Assembly: GCA_037447605.1 (NCBI GenBank)
Contig: CM074817.1
Location: forward strand, 1,550,001-1,614,000
Length of the DNA stretch: 64,000 nucleotides
Direction of reading: 5' to 3'
Origin: Zygnema circumcarinatum SAG 698-1b
Lineage: Eukaryota > Plantae > Zygnematophyceae
In this document: in pieces, positions 9,219 to 63,456 of the stretch
Layout of the letters: every line of letters starts with the position of its first letter
How positions within the stretch are numbered: position 1 is the first letter of the stretch
Position numbers and translations under genes: made by a program
The notes under the pieces: model-generated
Seen by the model: the letters and a program-made list of their open reading frames with translations, nothing else
Told to the model about the DNA's origin: nothing
Databases searched by the model: none

Positions 9219-11258
9219 ATGGGGCTATGGGGGCGCATTCTGGAGGACGTGCCGTGGGCAGACATAGAGGAGACTTTCTCCTTCGGTCCGGAGATAGGGA
9301 GCGGCTCCCTTGGCGTTGTCAGGCTCTGCTATGAGAGGAGTTCAGGGGAAGTGTTCGCTTGCAAGAGCATTCAAAAATGCATACTGAGGGAGGATGAAAA
9401 CAGAGAGGACGTGCGGAGAGAGGTGCAGATAATGCGGCTGCTCTCGAGGGAGGCACACCCGCAGGTGGTGCAGCTGAAAACGGTGTTTGAAGACTCTGCA
9501 AGCCTACATTTGGTGATGGAGTATTGCCGCGGAGGTGAGCTATTTGCGGTTCTCGCAGAGAGAGGGAGCTTCACGGAGCCGGAGGCGGCGGACATATTCA
9601 GGCAGATAGTGAAGGGAGTGCAGTTCTGCCATTCTCAAGGGATTTTGCATCGTGATTTGAAGCCGGAAAACGTGCTGGTGACGGAATATATTTCTGGAGA
9701 GCTCGAGGATTTGAGTAGCCATGGCGCCTTCTTGCGAAATTTCAGCACGGGAAGCGCCAGTAGCTCAGGCACCTCAATCGCTGATTCAGAAGGCAGTCAC
9801 CGCGAAGCACGGAGCGTTTTATCGGAGCCTAACTCGTGGGAGAGGCTTGATAGTGACAACTGGCAGGGAGGGGGTCTTAGAGGGGAGGGTAGCATGGGAT
9901 GGGAGGTGAGAGGAGAGGTAGCGGGAGCAGCAGAGTTGGAAGAGGTGGGAGACCTTTCAACCTTGAATGTGGAAAACTGGGAGAGGGAGAGTGGCGGTGA
10001 AACTGATGAAGATATTAGCAATGCAAGCAAAAGCTGCCGAGACGAAATTAAGATACGAGTTAAGCTCGGAGATTTCGGCCTTGCGGTGTTCATGGATTTG
10101 GATGGAAAGTATCGCTCTTTAAGCAGCAAGGCCAGCGAGCTTCAGTGCCCTACTCCCCTTTACAGTGCCCCAGAGCTCGCGCTTGCTAGGGCGTATGGCA
10201 GGGAGGCGGATATGTGGAGTCTGGGAGTGATTCTCTACGCCCTTATTGGAGGGGAGCTGCCATTCAGAGGCTCAACGCAGAAGGAGTTGGACCGCTGCAT
10301 TCGAAGGAGGAGACTTAAGTTTTCAAGTGGTCCGTGGCTTTCAGTCTCTGACTCTGTAAAATCCTTAATCCGGAGGTTGCTTGATACAAACCCGCAGCGG
10401 CGGCCGCTTACTGCAGAAGTTCTCATACATCCATGGCTGCAGCAGGGGCAGCATTGGCATTCACGTAGCGACCGGAAACTCCTCGAGCGATCTAAATCTC
10501 TTGGAGCGAAAGTGCTGCCGAGACGAACAAACTTGGAGAGACTCTTTGCGTGGACTCCCGGGTCTTCTTCTACACCTAACAGCTGTGCAGGAACTCCAAA
10601 CCCTACGACGGCAAGGGCACAGGGGAACAATGCACCGCTGTTCTCACTTTTTTTGAAAACCTCAGGGAAGGAGACGAGAGCTATCTCTTCCGGTGAATTC
10701 TCTGCATCTCCAGTGATCGTTCCCGTTGTGTCCTCCAACTCAACTTCCCCCTCGCATACTCCTTCACCACAGTCTCCTCTCTCCCCCTTGTCTGCCCATT
10801 TTTCAGCGAGGGAGGCCCATCCACTACTGTTAGACCCTAGATGTAACCTTTCGGAGTACGAAGAATGCAAGAAATGCCCTGGTGGAGGGCCTAATTTTGG
10901 AACTACTAGCGTCTTAGTTAGCTCAGGCAAATGTCCATGTGCAGTGAGGACGGAGATTGCTCCCATTTGTGGAATGGTTGTTGAAGAGGGTGTGAGAGAG
11001 TTGAAATCGACGTGGACAGTGGAGGCAGCCACTCTGCTTTTCTGCGAGCCAAGTTTGACTTCGTGTGAGAGAGAAACGGAAAGTGGAGGAGTGTTTCTTG
11101 GCAAAAAGACCCTCAAGACTCTAAAGACCTTTAAATCATTTAAGTCTTTGAAGCCGGATCAAGTAGTCATGCAGGGATGGGTGCAGCAGGCTCGCCTTCT
11201 GAAGGAACGCCTGAGGTCATATTCTCTTCGCTCACTACCAACCGTTGAGGGAGGTTAA
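9219..11258 (+). CDS. Intronless CDPK/PEPRK-related Ser/Thr kinase (679 aa), no EF-hands, large insert between subdomains VIb and VII
   Basis: GSGSLG, FACKSI, REVQIM, LVMEYCRGGELF, HRDLKPEN, KLGDFG, YSAPE, DMWSLGVILY and GPWLSVSDSVKSLIRRLL in one uninterrupted ORF. Confidence 0.9.
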   Translation: MGLWGRILEDVPWADIEETFSFGPEIGSGSLGVVRLCYERSSGEVFACKSIQKCILREDENREDVRREVQIMRLLSREAHPQVVQLKTVFEDSASLHLVMEYCRGGELFAVLAERGSFTEPEAADIFRQIVKGVQFCHSQGILHRDLKPENVLVTEYISGELEDLSSHGAFLRNFSTGSASSSGTSIADSEGSHREARSVLSEPNSWERLDSDNWQGGGLRGEGSMGWEVRGEVAGAAELEEVGDLSTLNVENWERESGGETDEDISNASKSCRDEIKIRVKLGDFGLAVFMDLDGKYRSLSSKASELQCPTPLYSAPELALARAYGREADMWSLGVILYALIGGELPFRGSTQKELDRCIRRRRLKFSSGPWLSVSDSVKSLIRRLLDTNPQRRPLTAEVLIHPWLQQGQHWHSRSDRKLLERSKSLGAKVLPRRTNLERLFAWTPGSSSTPNSCAGTPNPTTARAQGNNAPLFSLFLKTSGKETRAISSGEFSASPVIVPVVSSNSTSPSHTPSPQSPLSPLSAHFSAREAHPLLLDPRCNLSEYEECKKCPGGGPNFGTTSVLVSSGKCPCAVRTEIAPICGMVVEEGVRELKSTWTVEAATLLFCEPSLTSCERETESGGVFLGKKTLKTLKTFKSFKSLKPDQVVMQGWVQQARLLKERLRSYSLRSLPTVEGG

Positions 11259-26702: not shown

Positions 26703-28296
26703 GTTGGGCCTCGAACGGAAAGGACTGTGAATCTCGAGCCGGCCGGTTCTACAGATAGGGACGGAACGTGCCGATAATGTCGTCCCTTTGTCACCTGTCC
26801 TAGATGTGACGCATAAGCATTGACGCTTCAGTTTCTATCTCCGGAGCTTCAACCAGTTGAAGAAAGTTGAACCATGAGAACGCAGCCTTACTTGAATTCA
26901 GTTTGGTAGTGAGAGACTGGTTTTGAAGGGTTGTTCGTCTGAACAGCCAAAATCTTTAATTTCGGTGTTCCTCTAGGTTCTTCGTATGACAAGACAGTAC
27001 GGTAATACTGAAAAAAAACTTCTGTTCGATTTTTCCAAGTCTGACATGCCCACTACTGAATCTAAAGAACCATGAGAGCCCGATGATGGCATCCTCACGG
27101 CCGACCTCAGCCTCCGCCTCTCCACCCTCCCGGGGCTCCTCGTGGTTCCCGCACTTCTCAAAAGCATGTGCTCCTCATTTCCGAGGTTGCACGTGTGGCC
27201 GCAAAACTCCAATAGCCTCAATGATGGCGTGCCGTACACTGGGGGCCCGCCGCCGTCGCCGCCGGCGCCGCAGAGGGGGAGGGAGACCGACGCTCCGGGC
27301 AGCGGTAGACCAATAGGAGCCCAGGATCTTCGCCAGGGCAGGTGTGCGGAGTTTACCTGTCTGCCCGTGTCAACCGTTCGGACTCGAATCGCCACGTGTC
27401 TTGGCGGCATATAACAGAAATACCGGTCGCCACATCTCTCTCGTCGAAATACCGGTCGTCGTCGAGCCGTCCGGGGCCGAAATTCGTTCCGGCCGCTTCA
27501 ACGGCCCGCCCCCCGCAAGGTCGATGTACGAATCCCGTACGAACTCAGAGTCGGACGGAGGAAGCTCTTTTTGGCGTCTTATAACGGTAGTACCGGTCAA
27601 CCTCCGTCGTTTAGTGCCGAAATGAAGTTGCGGCTCTAGACGGGGCCGCCCATCGTAGGGCTGATGTGTACGGACGTGTTGTACTCGTTGAAGGACTTGA
27701 CCGCTGCCCGAAAACGGGCGACTTTTTGCCGCCCAAAAAATTGGGCCGTCACGTCACGCTTGAGGCGCCCCTCCAAATCGTTTTCAAACCGCGGCGGCGC
27801 GCGATCCTGCTGCCGGCCGGCGCCTCGAGGTCGCCGGCCACCCTGCCAGCCGGCGCCGGCCGGCGCGTCGCCTTCGGGGGCCGCGACTGATAGCCGGCCT
27901 CGGCGGGGCCGTCCCCTCGGGAAAAGCTGACGGCGAGAAAGTTTGTAGGGCGGCCCGAGGTATTCGGGCAGACCGCAAATAAATTTGGCGGCTCGGGCTT
28001 TTAGGTCTGCAGGTCAATGCAGGGTCCAAGCCCTGTGAGGAGCAGGGGGGGGGCTCAGGGCTGGCTCAGGCTCAGACTGACACTGACAGGAGGGCATATA
28101 TGTGGAAGGTGGGTCAGAAGTAGTAGGAGCAGCAGCGGCAGCCAGCAGCGGCGGCGGCGGCTGCATTCAAATTCTAAAATTAGTTCAGGGACAGGAGGAC
28201 AGGAGGTGCAAGCTGTTGGAGGGAAGGGACTGCGCCGGAAGGTTGATTTGGTGTGGATGTGAGCAGGAATTTGGGGGACTAACTTGCATTGCAGTC

Positions 28297-29979
28297 ATGC
28301 CGGGAGAGGCTGCAAGCGGGCTGAATTTCCAGGGCATGCCTGGCTGCTGCTCGATCCTGTCGCAGCCGACAGGTATCATTGGAGAGAAATACCGGCTGGA
28401 GAATGTGATTGGAAAGGGAACGTTTGGAGTGGTTCGGCGTGCAGTGCATCGAAAGAGCGGGCAGGTCTCTGCCGTAAAGGTCGTAGCCAAGAGCAAACTC
28501 GCATCCATAGACGATGTGGAGGACTTGCGGCAGGAAGTGGAGATTATGCAGGCGCTTCCACGCTCCGACTCAATTGTTGAGCTCCGAGATGTGTATGAAG
28601 ATGACGAGGCTCTCTACCTTGTCATGGAGCTCTGCAAAGGGGGAGATTTGCTGGATGTCCTGAACTCTCCGGCCATTGCTGCCGCCGACGGGTTCTCCGA
28701 GTCGGAGGCGGCAGAGATTTTTTATCAGGTGGCGGAGGCAGTGGCACACTGCGCTGAAAATGGTGTAATGCATCGTGATGTGAAGCCGGAGAATGTGCTC
28801 TTCGTGGAGCCATTTGCGGCTTCTCGCCTTGGTGAACAGCCTCAGCTTGGGAGCTGCGGCCATAAATTGACTCTGAGGGCGAGTGGGAGGGTGGCGAGGA
28901 AATTCGATTCGAATATAGGAAATGCAGAGAAAGAGCGGAAAGCTAGTAAAATTCAGGAGATTTTGGATTTTTTGGAGGAAGAAGGGGGTTTGAAGTTAGC
29001 AAAGCGGAAGCCAGCAAGAGTGAAATTAGGAGATTGGGGTTTGGCGGTTAGAGTCAGGCCGGGTGAGCTTATTGATGGAATGGCAGGCTCAGACCCTTAT
29101 TTATGTCCAGAGATGATTCTGGAGGAGCTTTATGGTTCGGAAGCGGATGTCTGGAGCTTAGGGGTTCTTTTGTACACTTTGCTGTCAAGAAGACTACCAT
29201 TTAGTGGGAAGCGTGATTGCGAAGAGAAAGTAGGATGCAATTCGATAGAAACTGATGGGAAAGGTGACAGAAGTGGCATTGCAAGTAGTGGGACTGCCAG
29301 AAAAGATCTTTTTGAGGCTATTTGTAGGGGACAGCTTGACTTGGAGTCGGAGCCGTGGCCGTCAATTTCGAGGGAGGCGAAGGATTTGGTCTCACAGATG
29401 CTGGCGGTCGATAAGCAGACTCGTCCAAAAGCACAGGACATATTGAAGCATTATTGGGTAAAGGAAGCTCGAGCAATCCTGCGGCCAGAGCTCTTGTCCA
29501 CTCTCATAGGGCAGCCTGGAATTGTTCCACTCGCAGAGATGAGGAGGCTCAGTTGTGAAGGGTTGACAGGTCTTGCAAGTCTGCCACCTACCCAGCCATG
29601 GCTGTCAAAGGCTACAACCATGGCAGTAGGGGCAGCTGCGACTATTCGTCTCCCCTTGAATGCAGTTGAAAGTATTTCCCCTGGAGGCTCCCCACAAGTA
29701 TCAGGCAAGGATTCTTTTCGCGTAGACTGCCTTGTAGAGTCAATTTCTCAAGCTGGAAAATCTCTTTCACGCGAAAACCCTAGGTCGATAACTACTCACA
29801 GCCAGCAATCGTCAGCGGCGGCTGATGATGCAGTTGCAGCTTGCTCGTCTTTGGTCTGTCCGAGTACCTGCAGATCACAATCTCCATCGGGGTTAAGAGA
29901 CACGTCTGCTTCTCGGCTTGGATCTGCATTGCGGTTGAATGACTTCTCTCTCAATTACCGATCGCCACTGCGATTGTAA
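28297..29979 (+). CDS. Second intronless CDPK-related Ser/Thr kinase (~560 aa from the first ATG), no EF-hands
   Basis: GKGTFG, SAVKVV, QEVEIM, LVMELCKGGDL, HRDVKPEN, KLGDWG, YLCPE, DVWSLGVLLY and EPWPSISREAKDLV. The ORF-track start at 28102 is a GTG; the first ATG is 28297. Confidence 0.88.
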   Translation: MPGEAASGLNFQGMPGCCSILSQPTGIIGEKYRLENVIGKGTFGVVRRAVHRKSGQVSAVKVVAKSKLASIDDVEDLRQEVEIMQALPRSDSIVELRDVYEDDEALYLVMELCKGGDLLDVLNSPAIAAADGFSESEAAEIFYQVAEAVAHCAENGVMHRDVKPENVLFVEPFAASRLGEQPQLGSCGHKLTLRASGRVARKFDSNIGNAEKERKASKIQEILDFLEEEGGLKLAKRKPARVKLGDWGLAVRVRPGELIDGMAGSDPYLCPEMILEELYGSEADVWSLGVLLYTLLSRRLPFSGKRDCEEKVGCNSIETDGKGDRSGIASSGTARKDLFEAICRGQLDLESEPWPSISREAKDLVSQMLAVDKQTRPKAQDILKHYWVKEARAILRPELLSTLIGQPGIVPLAEMRRLSCEGLTGLASLPPTQPWLSKATTMAVGAAATIRLPLNAVESISPGGSPQVSGKDSFRVDCLVESISQAGKSLSRENPRSITTHSQQSSAAADDAVAACSSLVCPSTCRSQSPSGLRDTSASRLGSALRLNDFSLNYRSPLRL

Positions 29980-31361
29980 GAGTGGGACATTTTCCGGAGA
30001 ATATAAGTCTTGGGCGTTATTCCTTCTAGGAGGAGCAAACCTGGATGTATCTCAGCATTGAGATGAATAAGTTTTTGGGGAGAAATTTACCGTCGGCCTA
30101 AGTTCGGTCTCAAGGGGAAGCGATCTGCACATGACTCTATTTCTTGAAGGGTCTTGGTTGGAGAGCTGGAGGCAAGAATATCTTCCACTTGCTTATGGTA
30201 AGTGCAAACTTCCCTTTAGCAGCTTGAGATAGATACTTTGGATGCGCAGTTTTCTGATGCTAGCAGTGTGTAATTCACTGAAATGCTTGTTGCAGGCTTT
30301 GAGGCTGGCACATACTTCTTCCTGGAAATTCTGGGTGTTGCTGCAAGATGTCAGGTCAATGTTTCTGTTGAGGTTTAGTCGTCTTGTGTTCTCATCATCT
30401 TCTCTTCTGGTTTGTAGTTGATATCTATGAAGCAAACGGCTCTGACTCTTCTGAATCGTTGTGCAGGTTTTTGTTTCTCAGCCGGTGGGCGCCCTCGGAA
30501 AATTGCTGTGCCCGTTGTTTTGAAGTAACAAGCTTTACTTCGGGAACCTGATTTACAATTTTGGAAAGAGATGACTTGTCTTAACATTAGAATTCCTTGG
30601 TCAAAAAGAAATTCTCGTCACTCAATTTAGCAGCAGGTCCTATTGCTCGTTCATTCATGAGCATAGACTTTGCCAAAAAACCCGCTCTTAGGTTTTTGTG
30701 TCCATAGGACACAAATCTTTCGTTTTGGTTCCAGTCCTGTTTCCGCCCAATTGTACAAAACGAGTAAAAGAGAATTCGGCGATTGCTTTTTCCATTCAGC
30801 TTGTTCTCTCCCTCCCCCCTACCTTCTTCCTTCTTTCTTCCTTCGCCTTTCTTCTTTTTCCCTTTTTTTTTTTTTTTTTTTCCCTACTTTCTTCCTTCTT
30901 TTCTGTAGAAAGAGCGTGCTTCGCCACTCTGAGCAACATGCCATAGTGAATACTTAGCAAGAAAAGATGGTTGGCAAGTCTCGCACAAACACACTGCAGA
31001 GCATTGGAAGGATAAGAAAAAAATCACATATGTCGCCGTCCATTGCTTTCCCAACGACATGTCCAGTAAGGCAATCAAATGCAAGCTAGAAAACGTATTG
31101 AAGACTGGAGACAACATGGCTAAAAAGACGCACTCTAATGAATATCTAGCTCATTTACAAACTTGAACCACTTCAAAATGAAGAAAAGCATAAAGTGGAT
31201 TATTGGATCAAAGTTGCAATTACAGTAGCGCAAACGGTCCAAAAATATAGAAATGGGAAGCGAAAGGAAGAAATGAAAAATACGCCATGATAGACAAAAG
31301 TATCAAAATAAGTATCGCAACAAAGCATGAAAGTAGCATTGGCCGGAACAAAAGTGAAAGT

Positions 31362-31480
31362 GGGTGCGACACCGGGACTTCCCGGGAGGTCACCCATCCC
31401 AGTACTGTTTCGGCCCACAGGCGCTTAGCTGCGGAGTTCTGATGGGATCCGGCGTAGTAGCCTAGGTATGATCGCACCAC
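31362..31480 (-). rRNA. 5S rRNA: 5S rRNA gene, single copy
   Basis: Minus strand reads GTGGTGCGATCATACCTAGGCTACTACGCCGGATCCCATCAGAACTCCGCAGCTAAGCGCCTGTGGGCCGAAACAGTACTGGGATGGGTGACCTCCCGGGAAGTCCCGGTGTCGCACCC. It has plant-type box A/C and base-paired helix II (TAGGC/GCCTG), with a T4 run just downstream. Confidence 0.95.
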
Positions 31481-46738: not shown

Positions 46739-49700
46739 ATGGAGGGGGAGGAAGCTGCAGCGGATAGAGATGGTGGGGGAAAGGAGGCGGAGGACGTGGG
46801 GGCTCGGCCAGCTGGAAGCGCTGAGGAGCAGGCAGGTGGCGCCACGGAGAAGCATGGGCAGGCGGCCTTATCGCGAGCCGCACGGAGGAAAGCTGCGAAG
46901 AAGGACAGGAGGCGGCAGCAGCGACGGCAGACGGCGGAGCAGAGGGAGGCGGAGGAGATGGCGGCCATGGCTGACCCGGAAGAGAGAGCGAGGAGAGAGA
47001 GAGAGGAAAAAGAGGAGTTGGAGGCGGAGGAGAGAGAGAGGAAGCAGCGGGAGGAACAAGAAGAGAGGTGGCTTCAGCGGGAGAAGGAGCTGGAGCTTGA
47101 AGCGCAGCGAAAGCATGAGCAGATGCTGCGGCAGAAGCTTGTGAGAAGTGGCACTTTTAAGGTTCAGTTTGCTCTTGCAGGACTACATATGCAACGGATT
47201 CCCCATTTTCTTTTCTTTCGTGAGCCAATTGGCAACTTCTGAGCCTTTTTGGGAACGCAGGCGGATGCACAAAAGGCGGATGGGGAGGAGAGAAGCGACG
47301 AAGACGAGGAGGAGGGCGAGGAGGACGGACCGCCAAAGATCATATGGCGGGGGAATGAAATCATTGTGGTGAAGAAAAAGGGGTCAAAGAAGGGTTCTAA
47401 AGCGGTCAAGGTTGAGGAGCAGACTGTTTCTCAGACTGCGGTAAGGATCCGGTTCTGCTTCTGTCAGCAGCTCCTGTACCACATATTGATTTGATAATCT
47501 ACATAACGTTTTTTTGGAAAAGTTGGAAAAGTTCGCGTGTTCTAACCTCGAAGCACACTTGAAATATGAAATTTTGCAATAGCCGCCTAGAAAATACGAG
47601 GTCTGCCAATATAGAAAAAGCACATTTAGGTTCATTCATGAAACCATGGGAGGGTGAGAGTAGAAGGGCTGAAGGAAGGGAAAGCGGTGTGGAGGAAAAA
47701 ATCCGACACCTCTAGGAGCCCTATACCTTCTTCACTTCACCCTGCGCCCTCACTTCTCAATAGCTCTACTGCAAAATTGCAGGCCCAAAACTATACTGCA
47801 TACTATACTATACTGTATACTGCATTGTAGCTCGTTTCTTTAGGTGTTATTTGTGTCGTATGGGAAGTCACTTGTGGACAAATAGATGGAAGATCAAAGG
47901 TTTTACGACTTCTTTTCAAAATTTACTATTTTTGCCCTTGTTGTTGACCTGTTGTATTACCACAGGAGCCCTCTGAGCCGCCATGGAACCCACCGCCACC
48001 TCAAGCTTCTGTACCACTGCTTTATTCCATGGCTGCATTGCAAGCTGAAAAATCTGCACAGCAATTAAATCCCGTGGGGAGCGAGGCCCCTGATCAGAAG
48101 TTTGGAACAGAGCAGGTACCCACTGAGCTGTGGCGAATCCATTGATTCTCACTAAATCTGCTGTAACTAAGTTAAAGTACTCGTGGTTTCAGCTTTCCAG
48201 GGATTTTGTGTCATTGGGTAAGGGAGTTGGATGCAGGATCGCGTGCACTGCCCCTTCTTCCTGAAGACGGGCGCATGCCAGTTTGCCAGCGCCTGCAGCC
48301 GAGCACATGTGTATCCGACCACCTCTCCCACCATCCTCATCCGCCACATGTTCTCTGTTCCGGGCAGCTCTGCCCTTCCTCAAGACCCTGAAGACGAGGG
48401 CTTGGAGGTCTGTAAAGAGACGGAAGGCTCGAGCAGGGCCGCCTCTCTCATGTTCCTTAGAATCTGCTGGAAACTGCACAGCATTGCATCTCAGGGTTGC
48501 AGCAAATAGTAGTTTTAGAGTGCACCTGTTGCATGCCCTTAGCCTGCAGATGCGCATGCATAGTCCGGATGATTCTCCCCTCCTCCTCCTCGCCGTCGTG
48601 GTTTGCATCGTTATCAACTTTTGTGGACTGCATTACCCGTGCTTCCCTCGAAAGTATGGTATATAGATGTCTTTGCTTGTTCTGCATCTGCTACTAGTTC
48701 ACGGTCTCAAAAGTCAACGCAGTAATCCCTTGACCCTGTGGCAGCAGCGCTGATGGGGAGTGGGGCCTAGTTGGCAGCACGACGAGGCATATGTGGCTGA
48801 GCACTTGGCCGAGTTCTATGCGGATGTGCACACGGAGTTTCAGAAGTATGGGGAAATTGTGAACTTTAAGGTATGCTTGCAAGGAAAGAAAAGATGTTGC
48901 GGGTTGGAGTGCTCAGAGGATTGCTGCGTCAGGTATGGCAGCAGAAGAAATAGGGAGAGGAGCGTAGATAGGAGGAGGAGTAGACTCGTCAGAGCAACTC
49001 ACAGGTGTTGTCTGGCATCAGGTTTGCCGCAATTTGTCACCTCACCTTTGCGGAAATGTCTATGTTCAATTTCGGCGTGAGAGCTCAGCTGTGGCAGCCT
49101 TCATGGCTGTGCATGGCCGTTTTTTTGCTTCAAGGCAGGTGAGCTTACCTGCACATTGCAGCTTCCCCCCCCTCCTCTTCCTTTGTCGACGGGAAATTTC
49201 AAAGGCTGTAGATATTCTGAAATTTATTGAATCCCGGATGCTTCGCTCTTACGAGTGTTAGTTTCATGGGCCGTCCTTCATTTTATTCGTTCTGACGGGA
49301 AGGAAAGCTAGGCTGTGAAGATCGTAATGTGCAAAGCAACTTTTGTTTTCTCATGGAGCACGAGGTTTGCTCTCATGCCTACGGATGCAGTTGTTTTGCG
49401 AATTTGTTCCTGTGAGGAGTTGGAGGAAGGCCATCTGTGGGCAGTATCTTCGAAGTGCCGTGCAGGTGCAGCTATACATGACCTCCTTACTTTTGTTTGT
49501 CAAATAAGGGAAGAAAGAAATTTTCAGCCCTCTGTGACTCCTTGAGTGCGGAAAAAGACGGAGGAGTAAGTAAACTGAAATGATCTAATGGATGCAGAGG
49601 GGATACGACCGCGCCACCTGCAATAGAGGGAGCACGTGCAATTTTCTACACCCGTATGAAAATCCCGAGGGAGACTATGAGTGGGCGGATAGAGACGAAC

Positions 49701-50626
49701 CCCCACCATTGTACTGGCGGACCAACATGCACCTGTTGTATGGGGAATCACCTGAGGAGGAAGCTCCTACTCCACGTGAAGGAGAAGGAAGGGTACAGGA
49801 GGAAGAACAGAGGCGACGACTGGGGTTGGCCAGGAAGAGGAGGAGATCCCATGAAAGGCAGGAGGATGAAGAATCACGAAGGAGCAGGAGGAAAGAGGTG
49901 GGTCAAAGGGAAAGAGAGCAGGATGATAATCGAAGAGGCAAAGAGGAAGTGGAGTGGCGCAGCAGAAGAGTGGAAGGAAGGCGTAATGGCAGACTGCATG
50001 AGAGCGACCCCCCTTTGAAGCACAGACAGAGCACGGCTGGAAGGTCTACTGAGGCAGGAAGCGGCGCTTCTGATGAAGAGAGTGATGATTCACAAAGAGG
50101 CGTACGTCGTAAAGGTGGGCAGTGGGTAAATGGCAAGAATAGAGGCAGGTCACAGGAAGGTAACTTGCACAGCGATACATTCCAGGAATCACATGGGAGA
50201 AGAAAAGTCAGTGAGGAGCATGTGGAGAGGAGGACAAAGGGAAGGGAAGGAAGGAGAGAGCGTGACGATTATTTGAGTAGGATACATCGAAAAGACTCCG
50301 AGCCAAAGGAGAGGAAGGATTCTTGGAGCAGAAGAATGGGTCAACACATGACTGGGGAGGTGAGAGGCGAAATGGATAGTGCGGAAGAGGATGAGCAGGA
50401 GAGGATGAGGGAGACATCGCCTAACAAAAAACATAGTAAGCAGCAGTATGCGGGAGATGGGTTGAAGCAAAGAAGTAGAGCAGAAAATAACCGGCGAGAG
50501 CTTAATGACGGAAGTCGCTTGCCGCAAGGAAACGTAGATTGCAGAAGTAGTGAGGTGGCCGGAATTGCTAATCTACGGAAGGAGGAGGAAGAGGATATGG
50601 ATCCCTTTGACCGATGGGGTTCCTGA
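46739..50626 (+). CDS. ZRSR2: U2AF35-related CCCH-UHM-CCCH splicing factor (ZRSR2/URP/RGH3-like), multi-exon
   Basis: N-terminal charged coiled coil, GTEQ|[44 protein letters not shown]|[43 protein letters not shown], and an R/S/E-rich tail. Confidence 0.92.
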
Positions 50627-50996: not shown

Positions 50997-53900
50997 TTAT
51001 TTACAGGTCCACGACAGACCTAACTTTTCCAACTTCAATAGCATGGAAAGGGCAGCCGAGTCCTTTGCCTTAGCATGAGATGGCATGGGCGTACCTGCTG
51101 CCGAAATTTCCTCATCCTGAATTGCCACGTGAGAGCAGAAAACAAACAGTGGGCAGTGCTGAGTTCCTTCCTCCTTGAGCAGCTTGTATGTGGGTAGCTT
51201 CCAGCCATTCTTGGTACAAAGGTGAACCAAAATTTGTCTGCTTAAGCCCTTCGTCTTCAAAACATAGCTGCAATCATCACTGAACTTTCCGGTATCACTG
51301 CCTTCAGAAGGTGCTTTGTCACCATTATCTGCACGAACAGTAGCATTATTCACAAGAGAACTCCCGATATCTGTGCTCACATTCTCGTGAGATATTCCAC
51401 GAGTGTGCTCCCATTCCTTCCAAGAAACACCTGAATCTTGACCTGTTCTGGCAGCAGGCTCTGTATCTTCTTCCTCTATCAAATCCTCTCCAGGCAGCAG
51501 TGGCGCTTTACTTTCCTCGGTTTTCTGAGCTGGATGTTTATTGATACTTGTCTCAGAACACACAAAGATTGCATTCCGAGTCTCGGGCTTTCCAAACAAA
51601 ACACGACTTTGGCTCCACCATTTGCTCTTGCCATCACGTCCTTCATCGTAGGCCCTTTCTTTGGATGGCAGTTCATCATGAAACATCTCTCTACTGACTC
51701 TGCACGAGTCCTCGAAAAGTTGACTTCCCAGAGCGCCTCCTTGCAGGACATTCCTATTCCTGTCTAGTTTTCCTTCCTCCCCTTCTCTAGAAGGTAGGTC
51801 AGTCTCTGTAAACTGTTTGTTGACTGCAGATTTACAACAAAAGTCTACCACTTCGTCCTTTGGCTTTCCTTCTTCAGAGAGATTTTTCAGAGCTTCATTT
51901 GAAGCTAGCCGTCGTGCGGTTTGGTAGCTTGAATTTTCAGCCCAAGCAGCAACACGACCATTGATCCAAAGCTCCACAATATGATCTCCGCAATCTGAGC
52001 AATCATTAGTCCGTGCCTGCATCATGAAGTAGCCCGCAAGCGCGTTTCTATCACTTAAAGTAGAAACCACTTTCCAATGGTGACGAACACACCTACTCCT
52101 TTGCATTATGAACTGCTATGTCGCCATGACAGGTGCATGTCTTCATGCAATGATAATAGTTTGAAGTTTATTCGATGAAATCTACGATGAAACTTGGCTG
52201 CCCTGAGTTGTTGCTATTTTCAACAAGGTAAGTTTCAGCAGTACGCACCTCAATACTCCATGCGTTCTTCTGGCAAAGCAACACAAGTTCTGCAGTGGGA
52301 TGTATGGCAGTTCTGCCTGCTTCTGGTAAGGGAGAAGCCAAGGGCTTGTACACCTGGAATCCGAATATGAGGTCAGTTGATCAGCGATAACCATTTTTTA
52401 GAAAACTTTTCCCTATTTGCTTGAATTTTCGCCAAAAGAGTCCCTATTCATGCGAACATTCCAAGCTAGGCATCACTGAAAATGGCAGAACTCCTTTACC
52501 TGCCACAGCGTGTTTGCATCAAAATCACAGTCCAGAATTATCGCCCCGGCAAGTGCTCCACACAGATCTGAAAGGGCCTTTGGAGCACTTGCTGTCACAT
52601 GTCCGAATGCGTGTTTTGGAAAGTCTGCTCCTTCACTCTCTCTTCCCGACTCTTCTTCCTCCACAGCTCTGACAAAAGCTGCTATTCGCTGCTTTAGCCC
52701 GCCATGCGCTACACGAAAGTGCTTTTGGAGACCACAGCGAATGATCATGCGGGCATAACGCTCGTTATTCACAGCAGCCTGCATAGAGAGTATTGAGGAG
52801 ACGAAGAAAAGTGTGACTTAGAAAAACTAGAGCGCTGAAGTACGTTCAACTTCAATGGCAGAGTTTCAAGAATCCAAATACCTGTCTCAAGATATTGAGC
52901 GTGCCGGGATCCCGATCCGGATTGTTGATGAGAAGTTGCCAAGTCAAAACATAGTCAATCGCAGCGTTACCCAAGTGAGCTAGTTTCTCAAAGTAGCTTC
53001 CATCCACACTTTCTTCTTCGCAAGAAGCATGCCGCAGAACTTTACTCAACAAGTAGCGTCTTCTGAATGTGTAGCCGATCAAACTCTCTACTTTATTCAT
53101 TTCTTCGTCCCCTATCTCGCTCGCCATATTGTTATTCCGCTCTTTAAGTTTCAGGAAGGAAGCTCCCAATTCTCGAAACCCTTGAGGTGGAGCAGCCATG
53201 GAGCACTCATTGAGGGAAGCAGGTGGGTTGGCTATTAGCGGCCGTTTCAGGTCTTCAAGTGAGTCTTTAGGGCTTTTAGGTTTGATATCTGTAGTCAACC
53301 ATGGACTGTTCTTCATTGTTGCACCCGCTCCAAGGTCGGACCTATTCCCTTCATGTATTCCAAGAACACATGTATCGCCCACTGGAAGTTCCCCAGGATT
53401 CAATCTAAGCGATTGAACCACGTATCCTGCCTCAATGCCAATTGAAGTCATAAATTTAACAGCGTAGTCCTCATCATCTCGTTCTAGAATCAATAGTCCA
53501 ATAATTGCTTCCACCACGTCTGCAATGATCTTATCAGATATTGCTTGCTCAGAGCGACAAAACGACGAATGGCATGACAATAAGTCAAACCCTTCATTTC
53601 GTACGTCACAACACTGTCTGTCAGGGCAAACATTTGCTTGCTCACGAATCGGCTTGTCTTCTCTCATAGGAATGGCTGAAAGGCCCGGTGCTTCCCATGC
53701 CCTGACGTCAAAGTGCTCACTTACAATGTAGTAAGGCAGGCCTGCCTCGACAGCTAGTTTTTTAAGTTCTTTGTTGCTCACTTGGTTCTGCAGGACGAAT
53801 GAGGATTATAAACATCAAATGTGGGGTTTGCACTCCTTCAAAAAACACTAGCTATCACACTATCCATTGGTCAGGAATGAGGAACGGAGGAGGGCTGTTT

Positions 53901-55969
53901 ACGCACCGTCAGTAGTTCGGCTAGTCGAAGCTCACTCGCATCGAAGTGGTTGAAGAAAAGTGAGCGAGCCACAGCATATCTCAAATATGCGTCACCCAAA
54001 AACTCATGGCGTTCGTACGAGTAGCCCTCCTGACTGCCTCGAGCAGTAAGAGCCTGCCGGAAAGACATGACTCACGGGAACACGGAGTTGCATTTGATCA
54101 AAATCTGCTGATGTTTGATGTCAGGGAAAAAATTTGCCCTTCCGCCCTGATAAAGACGAGCCACTGCACACAATGCATCTGCTACATGTTCGGAGAATAG
54201 TAACACAGTTCTCTGGCTACTACAGATGCGTGATGTTTTTATTTCTGATGCAATCAAAATGCATGCCAATGGTGAGCAGACAAACCTCCAACAGTTTCCT
54301 TGGAGAAACTCCAGAAAGTCCGAAATGCGCCTTGAGCTCAGATGCGAGCAGCAGGCAGTGAAGTCGATGCATGACAGATGGCAGCCGCACGGCTCCTCTC
54401 ACAGTCTGGCCTGTAAATCTATCAGATAGTACGCACAGTTCAGGTGGCATGTATATTTTCGAATGGCGATTGGACTCAGTCTGCACTGCTCTCGGCTTTT
54501 GAATGAGCATATTGCTGGCCTGCCGCACAGCCGAAGACATGCTGTTAACTTTCAGCTAGCAGCACATCCTGCCTGATGCTTTGACAAAACAAAAAGATTT
54601 CTGGAAATTCTCAGACAACTGTGAGAGGCCATGAAGTCGTTGTTCATGGCCACTGAATGAGAATTGCGGCACCACCACAATGGGAATGCTCGCTAAAAAT
54701 TTACCAATGCTGACATTTTGTTTTCGTTTGCGGGCATGAAAGTTTCACCTTCAGACGTCGCAAAAGAAGGAGAGGCTGCTGAGTGTGCTTTATCTCCAAC
54801 CCATGCTTACTCTTGAAATACTCTGCATAGCTTATAGACCCTAGTTTCCCCTTTCCAGGGACCGGGCTTTCAGCCGTTAGATCGGACGAGACGGTAAGCA
54901 CAATACAAGGTTCATGGTTTTGAACTCCTGTAACCAGGGAATCTATAACATCAGCTATACGGAAAGTGCCATTTCTTAGAATTAAGTGTTTCTTGAAATT
55001 TGTTGCAAGAATTTCCGGTGGATCCTGCATCGACGTACTTTGGAGTTTTTCCTCACAACACGAAACATCTCGCGAGGAGCAGCACTCTGCAGTATTGAAG
55101 ACGTCACTTGAACTCATCATCTTTTTTGCCTCCTCCATTTGGAATTCTTGATGGTTATCAAACTGCTTGACCACATTCTCTATTTCCAAGTCTTGTGCTG
55201 TGCCGTTTGTGGTTTTTGAGGGAAAGAAATCTGTATGGCAGACAGACAAGCTTCGACAGAAGTCTGCATGCCTTTCAGCGTTTGAAGTTGCATCCTTCTG
55301 CCAGAAATACTTCACGATCTCGTGTTTCAGCTTCAGTGAGGACGTCAGTTGCTCTTCCATTTCCGGTCTATGAGTAAGCCTAGCAAATTTATTCAGGTTG
55401 AGGAGAATGTAAGCTCTGTGATAGCACCAGAAGTTCGCCCACTCCATGTTCGACTTTGAATTGAAGCTTTTCGCTACATTCTCTCTCAGTGGTTCCGGCA
55501 CAGCTCTCGCGAAGCCATTCTCGCTCAAACCGAGAGCTATCCTGAGAGTTTCGACATGAGATATCTTTGCTTCTTCTAGTTGCACGTGGTTAAAAGAAAA
55601 AGGTCCTAAAGGATGTAAGCGCGCTGCAACAGAAGAATGCGGGAGAAAAAGTTCCATGTCGCCAGATACAACATCGTTATCAAGACATTCCGCCACAAGC
55701 AAAACAAAATCTTCCGCCGCTGCCTGTGGCGGATCTGACAAGCAGTCGATTGGCTTAAAATGGATCACATAGGCATAAAGTAAAGTTTCCAAAGACGGCG
55801 CAGAAGAAGTAATTGTGTTTCTGGCAGTGCCGTCCCCCTTCTGCTTCGCTTCCTCGTCTTGCAAGGCTGCTTGTACTATCCAGATTCCGGTAAACTTCTT
55901 CGGCCAAAGCCGAGGATATGCTGCAATAGAATGAGGATACCTTTCAACTCTTGCTAGCAGAGTCGCCAT
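50997..55969 (-). CDS. DCL: Dicer-like protein (DCL1-like): platform-PAZ-RNaseIIIa-RNaseIIIb(degenerate)-dsRBD-dsRBD, 1347 aa. Exons 54749-55969, 54286-54555, 53907-54053, 52882-53787, 52500-52778, 52249-52353, 50997-52112.
   Basis: Six phase-0 GT-AG introns give an open frame. PAZ SYAEYFKSKHG..QQPLL; connector MPPELC...RGAVRLPSVM; RIIIa ERHEFLGDAYL/KIIADVVEAIIG; RIIIb EKLAHLGNAAID/PKALSDLCGALAG; dsRBD2 EEGTQHCPLF...GTPMPSHAKAKDSAA. Confidence 0.93.
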
Positions 55970-57377: not shown

Positions 57378-57935
57378 TCACAAGGGGCATGCCTTCTCAA
57401 ACTCGCTCTGTTGCTTCCGACACATTTCAAACTCATTCGTGTAGTAGTTCATACACTTGGCATAGGTATCCATCGCTTTAGGGCACGTAGTATGGAGCTC
57501 CTTCAATCTGCAGCACCCTCAGTCACCAATGACTCTCAAGTACTCCAAAACTGTAATTGCACTCGAGTACGTCCGAGTCTCCAAGATTACAGCAAAGCTA
57601 CAATCTTCAACACAACAAAGACCATAGATATGAAACAAGTGCTAGCGTGGCTAGAGGGCATAAAAGCAGAAAAAAATATCTCCTACATACTCATAATGCA
57701 TGGCAGAGTGCCACAGGAGAATTAAGGATGGAACGACGTACAATGAAAGCACGCATTTCGTGACATTTTCCCCCTGCTGAAGGCACTTCTCGGGGTTTTC
57801 GTCGGCCTTCTTACACTCCAAAAAAGCTTGATTCTGTTCTCTGCACTTCAAAGAAATGTGCTTCGCGGCCGTCATCAGAACTGCAGAGGTGGTGAGGGGT
57901 GTGTCCGCATCGCTCACGGCTGCGTCCCCGGCCAT
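57378..57935 (-). CDS. NDUFA8: Mitochondrial complex I subunit NDUFA8 (twin CX9C), 107 aa. Exons 57742-57935, 57378-57507.
   Basis: TSAVLMTAAKHISLKCREQNQAFLECKKADENPEKCLQQGENVTKCVLSL|LKELHTTCPKAMDTYAKCMNYYTNEFEMCRKQQSEFEKACPL*. Confidence 0.95.
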
Positions 57936-59714
57936 TGGGGCACCCTTCACTTTGCGCTGAATTCTTTCACCTGGCAAGCACAAGGGCAAGAGATTAGCCC
58001 CACACCAGTATTGGAAGACGAGGAATGGTAGACAAGGTATCTTTCAACGGTATCTACCCTATCACTAACTGCTGTCACTTTCCGGTTCTTGAGAATCTGA
58101 CCAACAAATGGCTGCGAGCGCGCCATAGAACAGTAAGCAACGCGACCTCCGCAAATGCAGGTGGAGTTAACAATATTATTGGGTAGACGTTACAACGGGA
58201 TGCTGTCATAAAAATAATTGAGAGCAGTAAGAACCCCCGTCAACAACTGCCAGATTTGACGTGATTAGGCATGGATATAACATGATGAGCAGAAACTGCT
58301 ATAAGATGCACTTTGGATCATACATAAAAAGAAACTACGCTTCAGGTATTCATCTCCAAAACGGTTCTTTTCTCGAAGGGCATATAATACGTCTTAGAGA
58401 GAATAGAGACTAGTGGCTATGTACCAGCCCGTATATACTTACTACGTAGCCTGAAAAAAGAAAAGGAGGGAGCGGAATGCAGATTTCAGGAACGCTCTAA
58501 TCTGACCACATACAGTCCGAATTCCTATTGCAAACGGAAGTTCAAACAGAGTGGACAGGCTTGCCCTCAGCGGTGCAAACACATGAACACAGCCACACTT
58601 CAAGCCCCAGTCCATGCCCATCATGAGCTCCATAACAACTCGTGTCTTGTAGCAAGCCTGAAAAACAAAATTGCAACAAATGAATACTAAACTTTCCTCC
58701 CAAAAATAGCCTCTGCCTTCACGTAAAGAAACAATAGCCGATGAAAGCTCCCTCAATGATTTTAAGGTGAAAATGGAAAAAATGGGTTACCTTAATAAAA
58801 TAATTATGGCGCCCCTGCAACTAAGGCTGCTTTTAAAAAGCGACTGAGAGAAGAGGGGCCACATTATATGAACATAACGAATGTGAAAAAGTTTTCAGCT
58901 CCATCTCATTCTTTCCGTCTATCTCCCCATTCTCGCTAGCAGTTGGCATCATCCTTTCCCCTGTCTCTCTCTCTCGCGCGGTCTCTCGCTTTATTTCTCT
59001 CTCCCACCTCCCCAACCAGTGCCTTCATGTAGATGTTGAACTCTAATCTTGCATTGTATGTTTTGAAATCCATTATTCTAGTTTTCTCGCTCTATATACT
59101 CGCATATCCCCTATTCACTCCACCTATCTATCTCTATTCTTCTGAAGTCTGGATCCCTTCATACCCTGTGAAACAGTTCACTCCTACCAGCTGTCTCTTC
59201 TGCTTCTATATAATGTGTCTCTAGCACTATTTTTCAGCATCCTCTCCTTTAAATTATTTACTCTCGCTTTCTCTCCCCCACCCTCCCTCGCCCCTCGGCT
59301 CCTCCGCCTCTGCTAAAGCCACCATTTGATGGTCCACATCCACCTCAGCGCATTGCATTTCCTTTCTCATTTTCCATACTATAGATCCATCCACCTACCT
59401 CAAGTGCAGGAGCAATACGACAGCCGCACTCCCTCCCAGCGCTCCACTCCTCGCTCCGTCTCCCTCCGCCTCTCACCCTCCCTGCTCCCTCCCCCCACCG
59501 CGGAGGAGGCAATGCTTTTTAGGGCACCAAGTTTCCAGAGTGCGTATCGCGATATCATACGACTACGATACTTACGATACGCTATAAGCAATACGGTGTT
59601 TTTGTGATAGACACGATACGATATGGAAAGGTGCGATACGATATGGGCCCTTAAGACGAGGTGTGAAGCTCGAAGGCTGCGAGTTAACGGAGGCAGGGAG
59701 AGCAGAGTGCAGCC

Positions 59715-62700
59715 ATGGCTGCCATGGCATGGAACGTCTCTGGTTCTGTCGGCAGCAGCTTGAAGCTGCAGGAGACGAGCGCACCTGCCTCTATTTCAAG
59801 GGTGGAATGCTGCTGCAGGTCCACCTTTTGGGGAGGCGGCGTTCTTGAAGAACGCAGTAAAGTGGAATGGTTGCGCTACAAGCTTCGCACTGCTAAGGTA
59901 AAGTAGGGTCTGTTCTGTGTCAGTAAGATTTGTCTTATGCGTGGTATTTCTTTGTTTTTTTATCTTAGAAAGGGTTTAGGTTCCAGTAGGATGATGCAGA
60001 GGGGACTGAAACCGGAGTGGTTGTTTCAACGAGACGTACTGGCAGTCAGCTCCTTTCTCTGCTGGATACCCTTGCATTTAAAAATGAGAAGAATTTCTTG
60101 TATGTTTACAGGATAATCCTCAATTGCCCATGCCAATGGCGAAAATCAAGCGCCGTAAAGACCCTCAATTGGATGAAGTTATTGAGCGTGACAAGAAAGT
60201 GCGCCTTGTGACTAAAATGAAGGAACTCCTCGTCAAGCAGGTCTGCTCTGGGGCTCATCTCGTTTAGTTACAAGATTAACGAAAAGCCTTCTTTGTTGTA
60301 TATCCCTTTTTTTGTGCGAACTGCGTTCTTGCTAGGCAGCGCTGGAGTAGTATCTTATATAGTGATTCATGCATATGTATTGCCAATTTCTTACGATTCT
60401 GCTTTTGTATGGTTTTTAGGAGGGACGGGTCATGTCGTTGAAACAGCTGGGATTGCATCGGCGCACGCTTGGATTGCGAGGAAGGCGGCGGTGCATTGTG
60501 TTGCTGAGGAGGTGAGACTGGACATCCATTTGTTGTTGGAGTTCGTTTTGAAGAATCTGACAAGGCAAAGCAGGAGATGCCGCATGTGAGGTTAATTGTT
60601 GCATACTAGTTTATAGCGAGTCATCAACACCTAGCTAAAATAGTAGAGTAAAGAGCAGAAAACAGCTTTACTTAATCCCGACTCAGTAATCAGAAAGTTT
60701 ACACTTTCGTCCAAACTCCTTCATTGGAAAGGCAATGAACTTGATCGGAAAGGCAATTCAGAAATAAAATTAAAAGGCATCTACAAGATCAATCTGAACT
60801 ACCCTTTGATAGTCAGGCTATAAACTTTTATTGCCCTGTAGTTGGTGTAATTTTTACTTGTATCTAACCTGGCATGTGTTAGTTCAATGGTCAATGGAAA
60901 AGAAAGTCGGTTACTTCATGGAGGTGGTCTCTGATTGCAGGTTCCCCGCAGTGTTTGAGGTGCACGATGAGGGGGCCGGACAGGTGTGGTTTCGATTCAC
61001 AAGGGCTGCAGAAGAGCAATATCTGAAAGAGACTCTTCTGAGGGAGAGAATGGAAAGCATTCTGGTTGACAAGGTAAGAATATTTGTTGCTCAAATCAGA
61101 AAGCAGTAGGGACTGTGATGTTCTTTGATCTTTCAACCATCCGCCGGGCATGCACAGAATACTTCATAAACTGTATCCACCAACTATTAAGTGCATATTA
61201 GATACCTTCTTGCATCAAACCCCTGCACTGCTAAGGTATATGTCCGTCCATTGAAGACTTGGAGGTTTTCTGTACCTTTACCTTACCTTTTTGTATAGAA
61301 CATCAATCATGTCCTGCAGAAGTCGTCTGCACTTAAGCTTAATCTGTCGGCCGTTTCTCGCGTATTGCGTAGGTTCGAAAGCTGCTAATGATGGCAACAG
61401 AGAAGCAGCTACTTGTTCAGAAACTCACACACCTCCGGAGAGACTTGGGCTTGCCGCAAGACTTCGCAACAGTAAGTACAATCTCGCCATCACGCCATAT
61501 AGAGGACAAGAGGATATCAGTGTTCGTACTTTATCCATTATGGATACCCTTTGTTTTGTTGAGTGGGACCTCTTTACTATTGCAACTAGTAGGCGGAGAG
61601 CCTCTTATGGACCTCAGACAAGTGGGTGTTGAACTTCTTTGACGAATTAGAGAGCGTGTGCTGGAATAAGGCATGCATTCCTAACGACTCAGACTATGCA
61701 TATCAAGGTCGACTAAAAGAGTCCTCGGATCCCATGTATGAAATCTAGAAAACATAAAGAAGAGGGAGACAAAAAGCTAGTCCTTATGCCTTCCCCTGTG
61801 TGTGTGTGTACAGAACATGTTGCGCAATTACCCGCAATACTTTCGTCTCAAGTCCACAGTGGAGGGACCCATGTTGGAGCTAACCTCCTGGGATCCCTGC
61901 CTTGCAGTGTCAGCCCTAGAACATCAAGCAGCAAAAGAAGCAGCAAAGTTAAAGGAACAGAGTGAAGCTACCTTTGTGGGACAAGGTCTAGGGAAACAAA
62001 GCGATTTTGGGCCTGCAGTCGATGGGTTACAATTGGTAGAGGATGACGAAGAGTATACGAGTGAGGATGAAAGCGAATGGCTAGAACAACGAATCAGTGA
62101 TGCAGAAGCGATAGAAAGACTGGGCTTCCGCAGCCCCTTTCGTAGTCCAATCGATGTGACTGATGGTGAACATCGTTTGTTGGCAAATGGTGATGCTGAA
62201 GGGAATTCTAGGCTTGTAGAAGATGGAGCTCAGGGAAGTGTAGAACTTAATGGTGAGGAGGCTGCTATGGCTGCAATAGCAAGAGGGAAGGCAGCAGTTG
62301 GAGCAGGAACATTTGGAACTTCAACTGATCCTGATCGGCATGCCCGTAAGAAACGGGTGAATCTTAACTTTCCACCTGGCTATAGTGTTTCACGGAAGGA
62401 CCTGAAACGACTGCAGGCCTTCTTGGACCTTCCATTTGTCTCACCTTATTCTGACGCTTCTGAAGTTCATCCGGCGTCCAAGGAAGCAGAGAAGCGTAGC
62501 GTAGCCGTTCTGCATGAGATGCTGTCACTGACATTGGAAAAACGGCTGCTATGTGATCATTTCACACATTTTCGAAGAGATTACAGGTGAGTTTAGAAGG
62601 AAGGGTTGGGAGAGTGTAATCGAAAACGGGTACGACATTGTAGTGTTTTCCTAAGCTATATAGATGGTGCATGATGCCGTATCATATCTCTCCCATGTGG

Positions 62701-63456
62701 GCTTTGTCTGAAGAAGAGAGATGGTTCAAGTCTGTTCCCTTCGGAAGATGTTACAGCAGTTGGGGCAGCGTAGAAACTGACCACTGAATGATAGTGGATT
62801 TGGCAGTGACAGTGATCATATTGAGCATCGTTTGTTTTCGAAGTCGATGTTGGTGTTTAACCATCGTTTGGCATTGTAAGCAGAGATTGGTGTATCGATC
62901 TACAGTCAGTTCTAATGAGCATGTGGACATGTGCAGGTTGAGTCAGCGTCTTCGTGGGATGATCATTCGCCACCCTGAGCTCTTCTATGTCTCAGAAAAA
63001 GGCATGCGTGATTCAGTCTTTCTTCGAGAGGCTTACAATGGCCTGACTCTTGTCAAAAAGGACCCGCTTGTGCAAGTAACCGACGAACTGCGACAACTTG
63101 TGTGGTTGGGAAAGAAAACACAGAAAATAAGGTCACGTGGTGAAGGCGATGAAGATGAAGATGATGACAATGAGGACTATAGTGAGGATGATGAGGATGA
63201 TGATGACGATGATGATGATGATGATTATGAGGATGATGATGACGATGATGGGTGGGGGGAGAGTGATGATGAAGAAGAGATTTCCCGCGATGAAGATCGG
63301 CCCCCACGAGGGTATGCAAGAGGAGCACGCACCTATCCTCCTGTGCAAGGTCGGGTTTTACAAGTAGGGAGGCAGAAGGTGCCGGCATCAACCTGGAGAA
63401 GGCCGCAGCCTGAAAAGCAAGAGGCGGTTGGTGCACCGCCGAAAGAGAGATGGTGA
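59715..63456 (+). CDS. WTF1: WTF1-like PORR-domain chloroplast group II intron splicing factor, multi-exon
   Basis: KRRKDPQLDEVIERDKKVRLV, KLTHLRRDLGLP, YPQYFR...GPMLELTSWDP, EKRSVAVLHEMLSLTLEKRLLCDHFTHFR, RLRGMIIRHPELFYVSEKGMRDSVFLREAY, and an acidic tail. Confidence 0.9.

Follow-up and report, generated by a model that had tools for sequence, protein, structure and literature searches.

In this study we analysed a window of 64,000 nucleotides from the zygnematophycean alga Zygnema circumcarinatum SAG 698-1b (contig CM074817.1, positions 1,550,001 to 1,614,000 of the forward strand) and found on its minus strand a gene for a helicase-less Dicer-like (DCL) protein with two unequal RNase III domains: RNase IIIa (RIIIa) has all four metal-binding carboxylates, whereas RNase IIIb (RIIIb) has lost three of them. 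We give a probability of about one half to the reading that this is a maintained protein of the DCL-New/mDCL type in which RIIIa would be the sole cutting site and RIIIb a pseudo-nuclease, and which would cleave one strand beside a canonical DCL. Dicers are defined by two staggered cuts, and to our knowledge one-site Dicers have been well studied only in the form of human tumour mutants. If our reading is true, a germ-line, evolutionarily retained one-site Dicer-like protein would represent a natural strand-specific nuclease for double-stranded RNA (dsRNA).

In RIIIa, the signature YERHEFLGD (54017-53991) contains E (54005-54003) and D (53993-53991), and the second motif IADVVE (53526-53509) contains D and E. 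The corresponding motifs of RIIIb are altered as follows.

52966..52989, minus strand: RIIIb signature EKLAHLGN, with GCT Ala (52980-52978) at the position of human E1705 and AAC Asn (52968-52966) at that of human D1709.
52557..52583, minus strand: second RIIIb motif PKALSDLCG, with Asp (52568-52566) kept at the position of human D1810 and GGA Gly (52559-52557) at that of human E1813.

Direct reading of the minus strand returned exactly the positions that an earlier note on this DNA, made from its letters alone, had given for both motifs. Using phmmer against solved Dicers, FEKLAHLGN aligned with YQRLEFLGD of human Dicer and fly Dcr-1, and PKALSDLCGA aligned with human PKAMGDIFES and AtDCL1 PKVLGDIVES. 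Human residue numbers were counted along chain 5zak_A in these alignments, and the correspondence proposed in the note, to E1705, D1709, D1810 and E1813, was recovered; these are the metal-binding residues of human RIIIb (PMC6695490). The four ligand columns of RIIIb were invariant in all 20 canonical plant, animal and fungal Dicers of a MAFFT alignment. Together with the phmmer alignments, this upheld the previously claimed loss of three of the four ligands in RIIIb next to a complete set in RIIIa. Thus the window protein has the four carboxylates per domain of a Dicer in RIIIa (E, D, D, E), and one of the four in RIIIb (A, N, D, G).

Apart from these ligands RIIIb is well preserved, as the note had also stated. 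A profile of the 20 canonical RIIIb domains matched residues 774-965 over its full length (146 bits, E=4e-47), and RIIIa reached 117 bits against its own canonical profile, which is below the RIIIb value. The window protein differs at 6 of 18 invariant RIIIb columns, three of them catalytic and two more of them conservative (A>V, Y>F). Judged by these alignments, the fold of RIIIb is kept and its metal ligands are lost. In E. coli RNase III, loss of D45 or E117, the homologues of the Asp and of the last Glu, abolishes cleavage while binding stays. In human DICER1, D1709N is a recurrent tumour hotspot allele, and with E1813G 5p miRNAs are not made while 3p activity is retained (PMC6695490). Because of the human alleles and the E. 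coli mutagenesis, we strongly infer by analogy that RIIIb is catalytically dead. That RIIIa is active appears moderately well founded from its residues.

By analogy with other tandem RNase III enzymes, RIIIa and RIIIb would pair as the usual intramolecular dimer. The catalytic metal would then be bound by RIIIa alone, and RIIIb would be a pseudo-nuclease that gives the dimer interface and RNA contacts, leaving one cutting site in place of two. Dicer RIIIa cuts the strand with its 3' end in PAZ, and therefore RIIIb-mutant human Dicer still yields 3p species (PMC6695490). From one active site and an RIIIa domain that cuts the PAZ-anchored strand, a measured one-strand cut is therefore predicted. 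PAZ would hold a 3' end of the dsRNA or hairpin, only the strand anchored in this way would be cleaved, at a measured distance, and this would yield a nicked duplex or one small RNA in place of a diced duplex. The protein would work beside a canonical DCL, probably not as its replacement. As far as the sequence goes, one competent and one degenerate RNase III domain are present; strand-specific nicking and cooperation with another DCL may follow from this, and are suggested more weakly, by analogy.

The spliced gene model was built from strand reading and from the translation of neighbouring open reading frames (ORFs). It comprises the following features, in which ME000134S00722 is the related protein of Mesotaenium endlicherianum (P0010 in our set; 939 residues) and dsRBD is a dsRNA-binding domain.

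50997..55969, minus strand: complete coding sequence of the Dicer-like gene without helicase (7 exons; 1347 codons and a stop).
54749..55969, minus strand: exon 1, N-terminus, platform-like region and PAZ (Pfam PAZ, E=1.6e-8; alignment with AtDCL1; donor AAG/GTGAAA).
54286..54555, minus strand: exon 2, connector between PAZ and RNase III (PPELC...RLPSVMHRL...ASELKA), 46% identity to residues 152-240 of ME000134S00722.
53907..54053, minus strand: exon 3, start of RNase IIIa with YERHEFLGD at 54017-53991, 52-57% identity to ME000134S00722.
52882..53787, minus strand: exon 4, remaining RNase IIIa (IADVVE, 53526-53509), 110-residue linker and start of RNase IIIb (FEKLAHLGN).
52500..52778, minus strand: exon 5, second part of RNase IIIb (AAVNNE ... 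PKALSDLCGALAGAIILD), matching AtDCL1 1630-1714 (E=1.2e-7) and human Dicer RIIIb.
52249..52353, minus strand: exon 6, last part of RNase IIIb, followed by the first helix of dsRBD1 (VYKPLASPL...HPTAELVLLCQKNAWSIE).
50997..52112, minus strand: exon 7, remaining dsRBD1, 220-residue linker, C-terminal dsRBD2 and stop codon (Pfam dsrm/DND1_DSRM, ORF residues 289-360).

The gene runs from 55969 to 50997, and its six introns all have GT-AG borders. The acceptor of exon 2 at 54555 is the least certain splice site of the model, and an alternative, more internal acceptor of exon 7 would shorten dsRBD1. The coordinates 52500-54053 of the earlier note cover exons 3 to 5 only. Its stop-free frame of 1347 residues was reproduced without an internal stop, as a spliced model of seven exons and not as one continuous ORF. 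In the joined frame the sole stop is the terminal one, whereas these coding bases contain 43-90 stops when read in any of the five remaining frames. Two linkers without detectable similarity to any relative are likewise stop-free: the one that separates RIIIa from RIIIb has 113 codons (P(no stop)=0.001 in shuffles), and the one that separates the two dsRBDs has 218 (P<0.0005 in the same test). The Dicer-like gene is a real, intact gene with an open frame.

The domain order is platform-PAZ, connector, RNase IIIa, RNase IIIb, dsRBD1 and dsRBD2. Pfam matched PAZ in exon 1 (PF02170, E=1.6e-8), RNase III in exons 4 and 5 and one C-terminal dsRBD. Exon 1 aligned with the platform (985-1070) and PAZ (1196-1276) of AtDCL1, so that PAZ lies upstream of the nuclease module as in other Dicers. 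The canonical profiles placed RIIIa at residues 493-659 and RIIIb at 774-965, which gives the two tandem RNase III domains in one chain that are expected of a Dicer. Of the two dsRBDs reported as conserved, the C-terminal one was confirmed by Pfam; dsRBD1 is interrupted by an intron and was recognised by alignment only, so that this statement is checked in part. The protein starts approximately at the platform domain. Searching the whole 64-kb window by tblastn with four full-length DCLs gave no match for the N-terminal helicase of Dicers or for DUF283, and a single set of RNase III segments. Within the window, a helicase exon that had been overlooked and a second, intact version of the RIIIb exon are thereby ruled out.

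The window protein and Mesotaenium ME000134S00722 are reciprocal best BLAST matches within our set. The Mesotaenium protein matches collinearly from PAZ through to dsRBD, likewise has no helicase and shares the unusual signature GYSYERHE with the window protein. In a maximum-likelihood tree of 31 Dicers the two grouped with the environmental fragment P0002 (support 95/81), and this group was joined by a second environmental fragment, P0109 (94/98). The whole lay inside the plant DCLs (98/98) and outside both the DCL3-type group (94/95) and the DCL1-like protein of Cuscuta. The rows of this clade are long-branched and two are fragments, and the tree was calculated without the bryophyte DCL-New sequences. 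The gene is therefore no isolated oddity. Derivation from DCL1 was rejected, as the tree places it outside the DCL1-like as well as the DCL3 group; instead, the gene groups with ME000134S00722, the Mesotaenium member of the published DCL-New clade (Wang et al. 2021, PMC7994812, Suppl. Data S3). We regard this grouping, which is read from sequence, as likely but not certain.

In the same DCL-New column stand Pp3c24_9630 of P. patens, Mapoly0016s0027 of M. polymorpha and GAQ87875.1 of K. nitens (PMC7994812). The 'minimal' DCL of Marchantia has Pp3c24_9630 as its homologue in moss (PMC11799827), and Mp6g09830 has been named MpMDCL and is closest to P. patens MINIMAL DICER (PMC13738684). The helicase-less architecture of DCL-New/mDCL, PAZ plus two RNase III domains, is present in the window protein. 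Helicase-less DCLs are thus already known as mDCL (2015), DCL-New (2021) and MpMDCL/MpDCL1b (2025-26), and the window gene is a further member of this little-studied kind. The RNase III catalytic residues of the clade are not mentioned in the literature surveyed, which did not include the founding study by Coruh et al. 2015. The half-dead catalytic centre may therefore be the new aspect, with prior treatment by Coruh et al. possible. As a separate point on this clade, K. nitens GAQ87875.1 (DCL-New) and GAQ87876.1 ('DCL1') have consecutive accessions (PMC7994812). Their genes are probably adjacent and could represent a single Dicer that annotation has divided, with consequences in that case for the interpretation of the DCL-New clade.

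No close relative of exon 4 was found by phmmer among 1.84 billion representatives, the best match having 35% identity. Word-indexed searches with the whole Mesotaenium protein (a search swamped by Ala/Pro-rich words), with its residues 60-345 and with exon 4 returned only the Mesotaenium protein itself and canonical Dicers. The catalytic residues were scored in the four members available to us.

Window protein: RIIIa intact; RIIIb signature A/N; second motif with D kept, E>G.
Mesotaenium ME000134S00722: RIIIa intact (YERHEIVGD, ADVAE); RIIIb signature FERLSYLGN (E>S, D>N); second motif ELANVVET (D>N, E kept).
Environmental P0109 (three ENA contigs): RIIIa intact (YSYERLEFLGD, LADVVEA); RIIIb signature FSRLSYLGD (E>S); contig ends before the second motif.
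Environmental P0002: RIIIa intact (YEREELLGD, VADVIEA); RIIIb signature FEVLEFLGD (E and D kept); contig ends before the second motif.

RIIIa ligands are intact in all four, and RIIIb ligands have been lost repeatedly and in different ways. Such an asymmetry is the pattern that would be expected with selection on the RIIIa site only. The statement of the earlier note that no plant DCL with this pattern is known does not hold for streptophytes, as the RIIIb domain of Mesotaenium is degenerate likewise (FERLSYLGN/ELANVVET) and an environmental relative reads FSRLSYLGD. Among these relatives the defect thus recurs in the degenerate RIIIb of Mesotaenium and in the E>S exchange of P0109; P0002 keeps E and D in the signature.

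Some further observations concern these relatives. P0109 and the window gene both have an intron behind the connector exon. In the P0109-type gene no intron separates the RIIIa signature from the exon that follows. P0109-type contigs from ENA metagenomes (L001-L003, L051, L062) have a GC content of 36-41% and stem from an environmental eukaryote with the E>S exchange in RIIIb. A metagenome scan with the RIIIa-signature alignment yielded mostly bacterial RNase III and distant eukaryotic Dicers, the only relevant hits being the known P0109-type contigs L051 and L062. The annotated Mesotaenium protein lacks the RIIIb helix PGxLxxLRQ (residues ~735), which is present in every other Dicer; the gap coincides with an exon boundary of the window gene, and the gene model is probably mis-spliced. 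Replacements of the signature Asp were also seen in other Dicer-like matches, namely in RIIIa of P0043 (LGR), P0050 (LGG) and P0112 (FGL), and, as IGN, in RIIIb of the fungal Mycena protein P0089. Tandem RNase III paralogues that are half dead may be commoner than assumed.

Several results weigh against a maintained single-site Dicer. No transcript or protein of the window gene, nor any spliced piece of it, was found by exact-sequence look-ups and three homology searches, and exact look-ups of the Mesotaenium protein and of two large exon ORFs gave no record. For no member of the DCL-New/mDCL clade has nicking been demonstrated. The defect was scored in the window protein, ME000134S00722, P0109 and P0002, which are of algal or environmental origin. 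As P0002 retains both residues of the RIIIb signature, the loss does not extend to every member and may reflect decay in particular lineages, and the orthologues are too distant for a ratio of nonsynonymous to synonymous substitutions (dN/dS). In addition, RIIIa itself is unusual: its signature has His for a conserved Leu, and its EGxL[ST]xxR motif (model residues 538-545, exon 3, about 53936-53913) reads ELRLAELL. The G, S/T and R of this motif are lost in the window, Mesotaenium and P0109 proteins, and in the window protein RIIIa activity is thus not assured. The motif includes the counterpart of human S1344, a position through which RIIIa is coupled to the active site of RIIIb (PMC6695490). 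In the matching RIIIb motif, PGxLxxLR, the P, G, L and L are kept. Loss of the coupling motif in RIIIa with its RIIIb counterpart kept would point in the same direction as selection on RIIIa only.

The drift of RIIIa (signature L>H; conserved G and R of EGxLxxR lost) is also what would be seen if the protein did not cut at all and served as a dsRNA- and end-binding factor, that is, as a decoy, ruler or partner that alters the output of a canonical DCL. Maize RNC1 gives a precedent, as its dead RNase III domains act in RNA binding. PAZ and the dsRBDs are retained in the window protein, and few small RNAs are changed in Marchantia mutants of a clade member (PMC11799827), both of which favour such a role. 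Nevertheless, we consider it unlikely: in RNC1 every RNase III domain is without catalytic residues, here RIIIa has E, D, D and E, and the persistence of all four RIIIa carboxylates in 4/4 members alongside repeated loss in RIIIb is predicted by selection for one working site. Single-domain RNase III enzymes function as homodimers. Both strands could accordingly be cut through sites in trans, by pairing of the RIIIa domains of two molecules or with another RNase III-domain partner, with RIIIb as a mere spacer. The retention of every RIIIa ligand across the family agrees with this as well, but the full RIIIb fold (146 bits against canonical RIIIb) argues for a retained intramolecular partner position, and we rate assembly in trans as distinctly improbable.

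Catalytic losses could also mark the early pseudogenisation of a decaying or unexpressed gene copy, which the missing expression evidence in look-ups and homology searches and the high divergence (35% identity for the best match of exon 4) would suit. The Marchantia authors have raised the pseudogene question for MpDCL1b (PMC11799827). Against decay stand 1347 codons without stop or frameshift, six canonical introns, long non-conserved linkers that have stayed open (P<=0.001) and conserved positions of the RIIIb fold. Moreover, the same architecture and a common D>N exchange in Mesotaenium at 37% identity imply long retention, and decay seems to us, if anything, slightly less credible than assembly in trans. 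Since a single assembly is behind the sequence, an artefact of assembly, base-calling or gene model has to be considered too. However, three separate codons are affected, all well inside exons and one of them (GAR>GCT) requiring two base changes, and similar changes occur in the independent Mesotaenium genome and in independent metagenome contigs, which makes an artefact highly improbable. A maintained protein with RIIIa as its one cutting site is the reading that we prefer.

The genetics of the clade fit a specialised helper or modulatory role better than general dicing. In moss, 23-nt siRNAs alone require mDCL, which depends on DCL3 (PMC5144951), with the size effect worded differently in a later review. 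Marchantia mutants of a clade member showed minimal small-RNA change under standard conditions and a salt-dependent change in miRNAs (PMC11799827). A bolder extension, which we regard as rather doubtful, is that natural single-site Dicers make up the entire DCL-New/mDCL clade, in streptophyte algae as well as in mosses, ferns and gymnosperms, and that in them RIIIa alone would cut the 3'-anchored strand at a distance measured by PAZ. If true clade-wide, this would explain why moss mDCL is needed for one siRNA class (23 nt) and depends on DCL3, and it would place a strand-specific 'nicking Dicer' step in the biogenesis of plant heterochromatic siRNAs. For mDCL/DCL-New, moss and liverwort phenotypes are known and a mechanism is lacking, and a clade-wide defect would supply a concrete biochemical hypothesis. 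If confined to algae, the defect would still illustrate a Dicer paralogue turning into a pseudo-enzyme module.

The surroundings of the gene comprise several other genes. Adjoining it upstream, at 57378-57989 (minus strand), is an unrelated small gene with a twin-Cx9C motif (CHCH/NDUFA8-like by eye). On the other side a CCCH zinc-finger gene (48760-50626, plus strand) encodes a protein with an Arg/Ser/Glu-rich tail, U2AF35-like by eye, whose last exon has no Pfam match. Its end and the stop codon of the Dicer-like gene are 370 bp apart; as these genes are convergent, their 3' ends could overlap as antisense transcripts. The window further contains a plant-specific PORR-domain (plant organelle RNA recognition) gene (60800-63456, plus strand) and two protein kinase genes (9219-11258 and 28102-29979, both plus strand). 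The PORR gene, the zygnematophyte origin of the closest relative of the Dicer-like gene and its place inside the plant DCLs all agree with a streptophyte alga as the source. A single 5S rRNA gene (31361-31479, minus strand; Rfam RF00001, 94.9 bits, full length) lies amid the protein-coding genes with no obvious array.

Among known proteins, Mesotaenium ME000134S00722 resembles the window protein most closely in lacking helicase and DUF283, in its collinear PAZ, connector, RIIIa, RIIIb and dsRBD, and in combining LGN (D>N) in RIIIb with an intact RIIIa. The two differ in sequence (37% identity over 576 common tree columns, 28-52% in individual aligned blocks) and in their exchanges, since Mesotaenium has S where the window protein has A at the Glu position and shows D>N with the last Glu kept in the second motif. 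Furthermore, the window protein has a second dsRBD and other linkers. The moss mDCL (Pp3c24_9630) and Marchantia MpMDCL/'MpDCL1b' (Mp6g09830), compared by their descriptions, have the helicase-less PAZ and two RNase III domains in common with it. They are described with PAZ and RNase III only, whereas the window protein adds dsRBDs. Canonical plant DCL3 and DCL1 proteins were the next-best matches (DCL3 of Riccia, Ginkgo and Ephedra; DCL1-like of Cuscuta) and have the same order from platform to dsRBD. In contrast to the window protein, which lies outside their clades, they possess helicase, DUF283 and all eight catalytic carboxylates.

Functionally, trypanosome RNA-editing endonucleases offer a parallel, as they pair an active with a degenerate domain and cut one strand of a duplex only. 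Like the window protein these enzymes (KREN/KREPB) are dimeric RNase III, in complexes with catalytically inactive RNase III motifs (PMC13036485). Unlike it, they consist of two polypeptides without PAZ, belong to a mitochondrial editing complex and show no close kinship. Further counterparts are the human DICER1 RIIIb mutants, in which homologous positions are hit, the D>N and E>G exchanges of the window protein being equivalent to D1709N and E1813G, and in which 5p processing is lost but the 3p arm continues to be cut by RIIIa (PMC6695490). The human alleles are somatic, occur in disease and affect a Dicer of full length that has its helicase, whereas the window gene combines changes at three positions in a germ-line sequence that has apparently been maintained in evolution.

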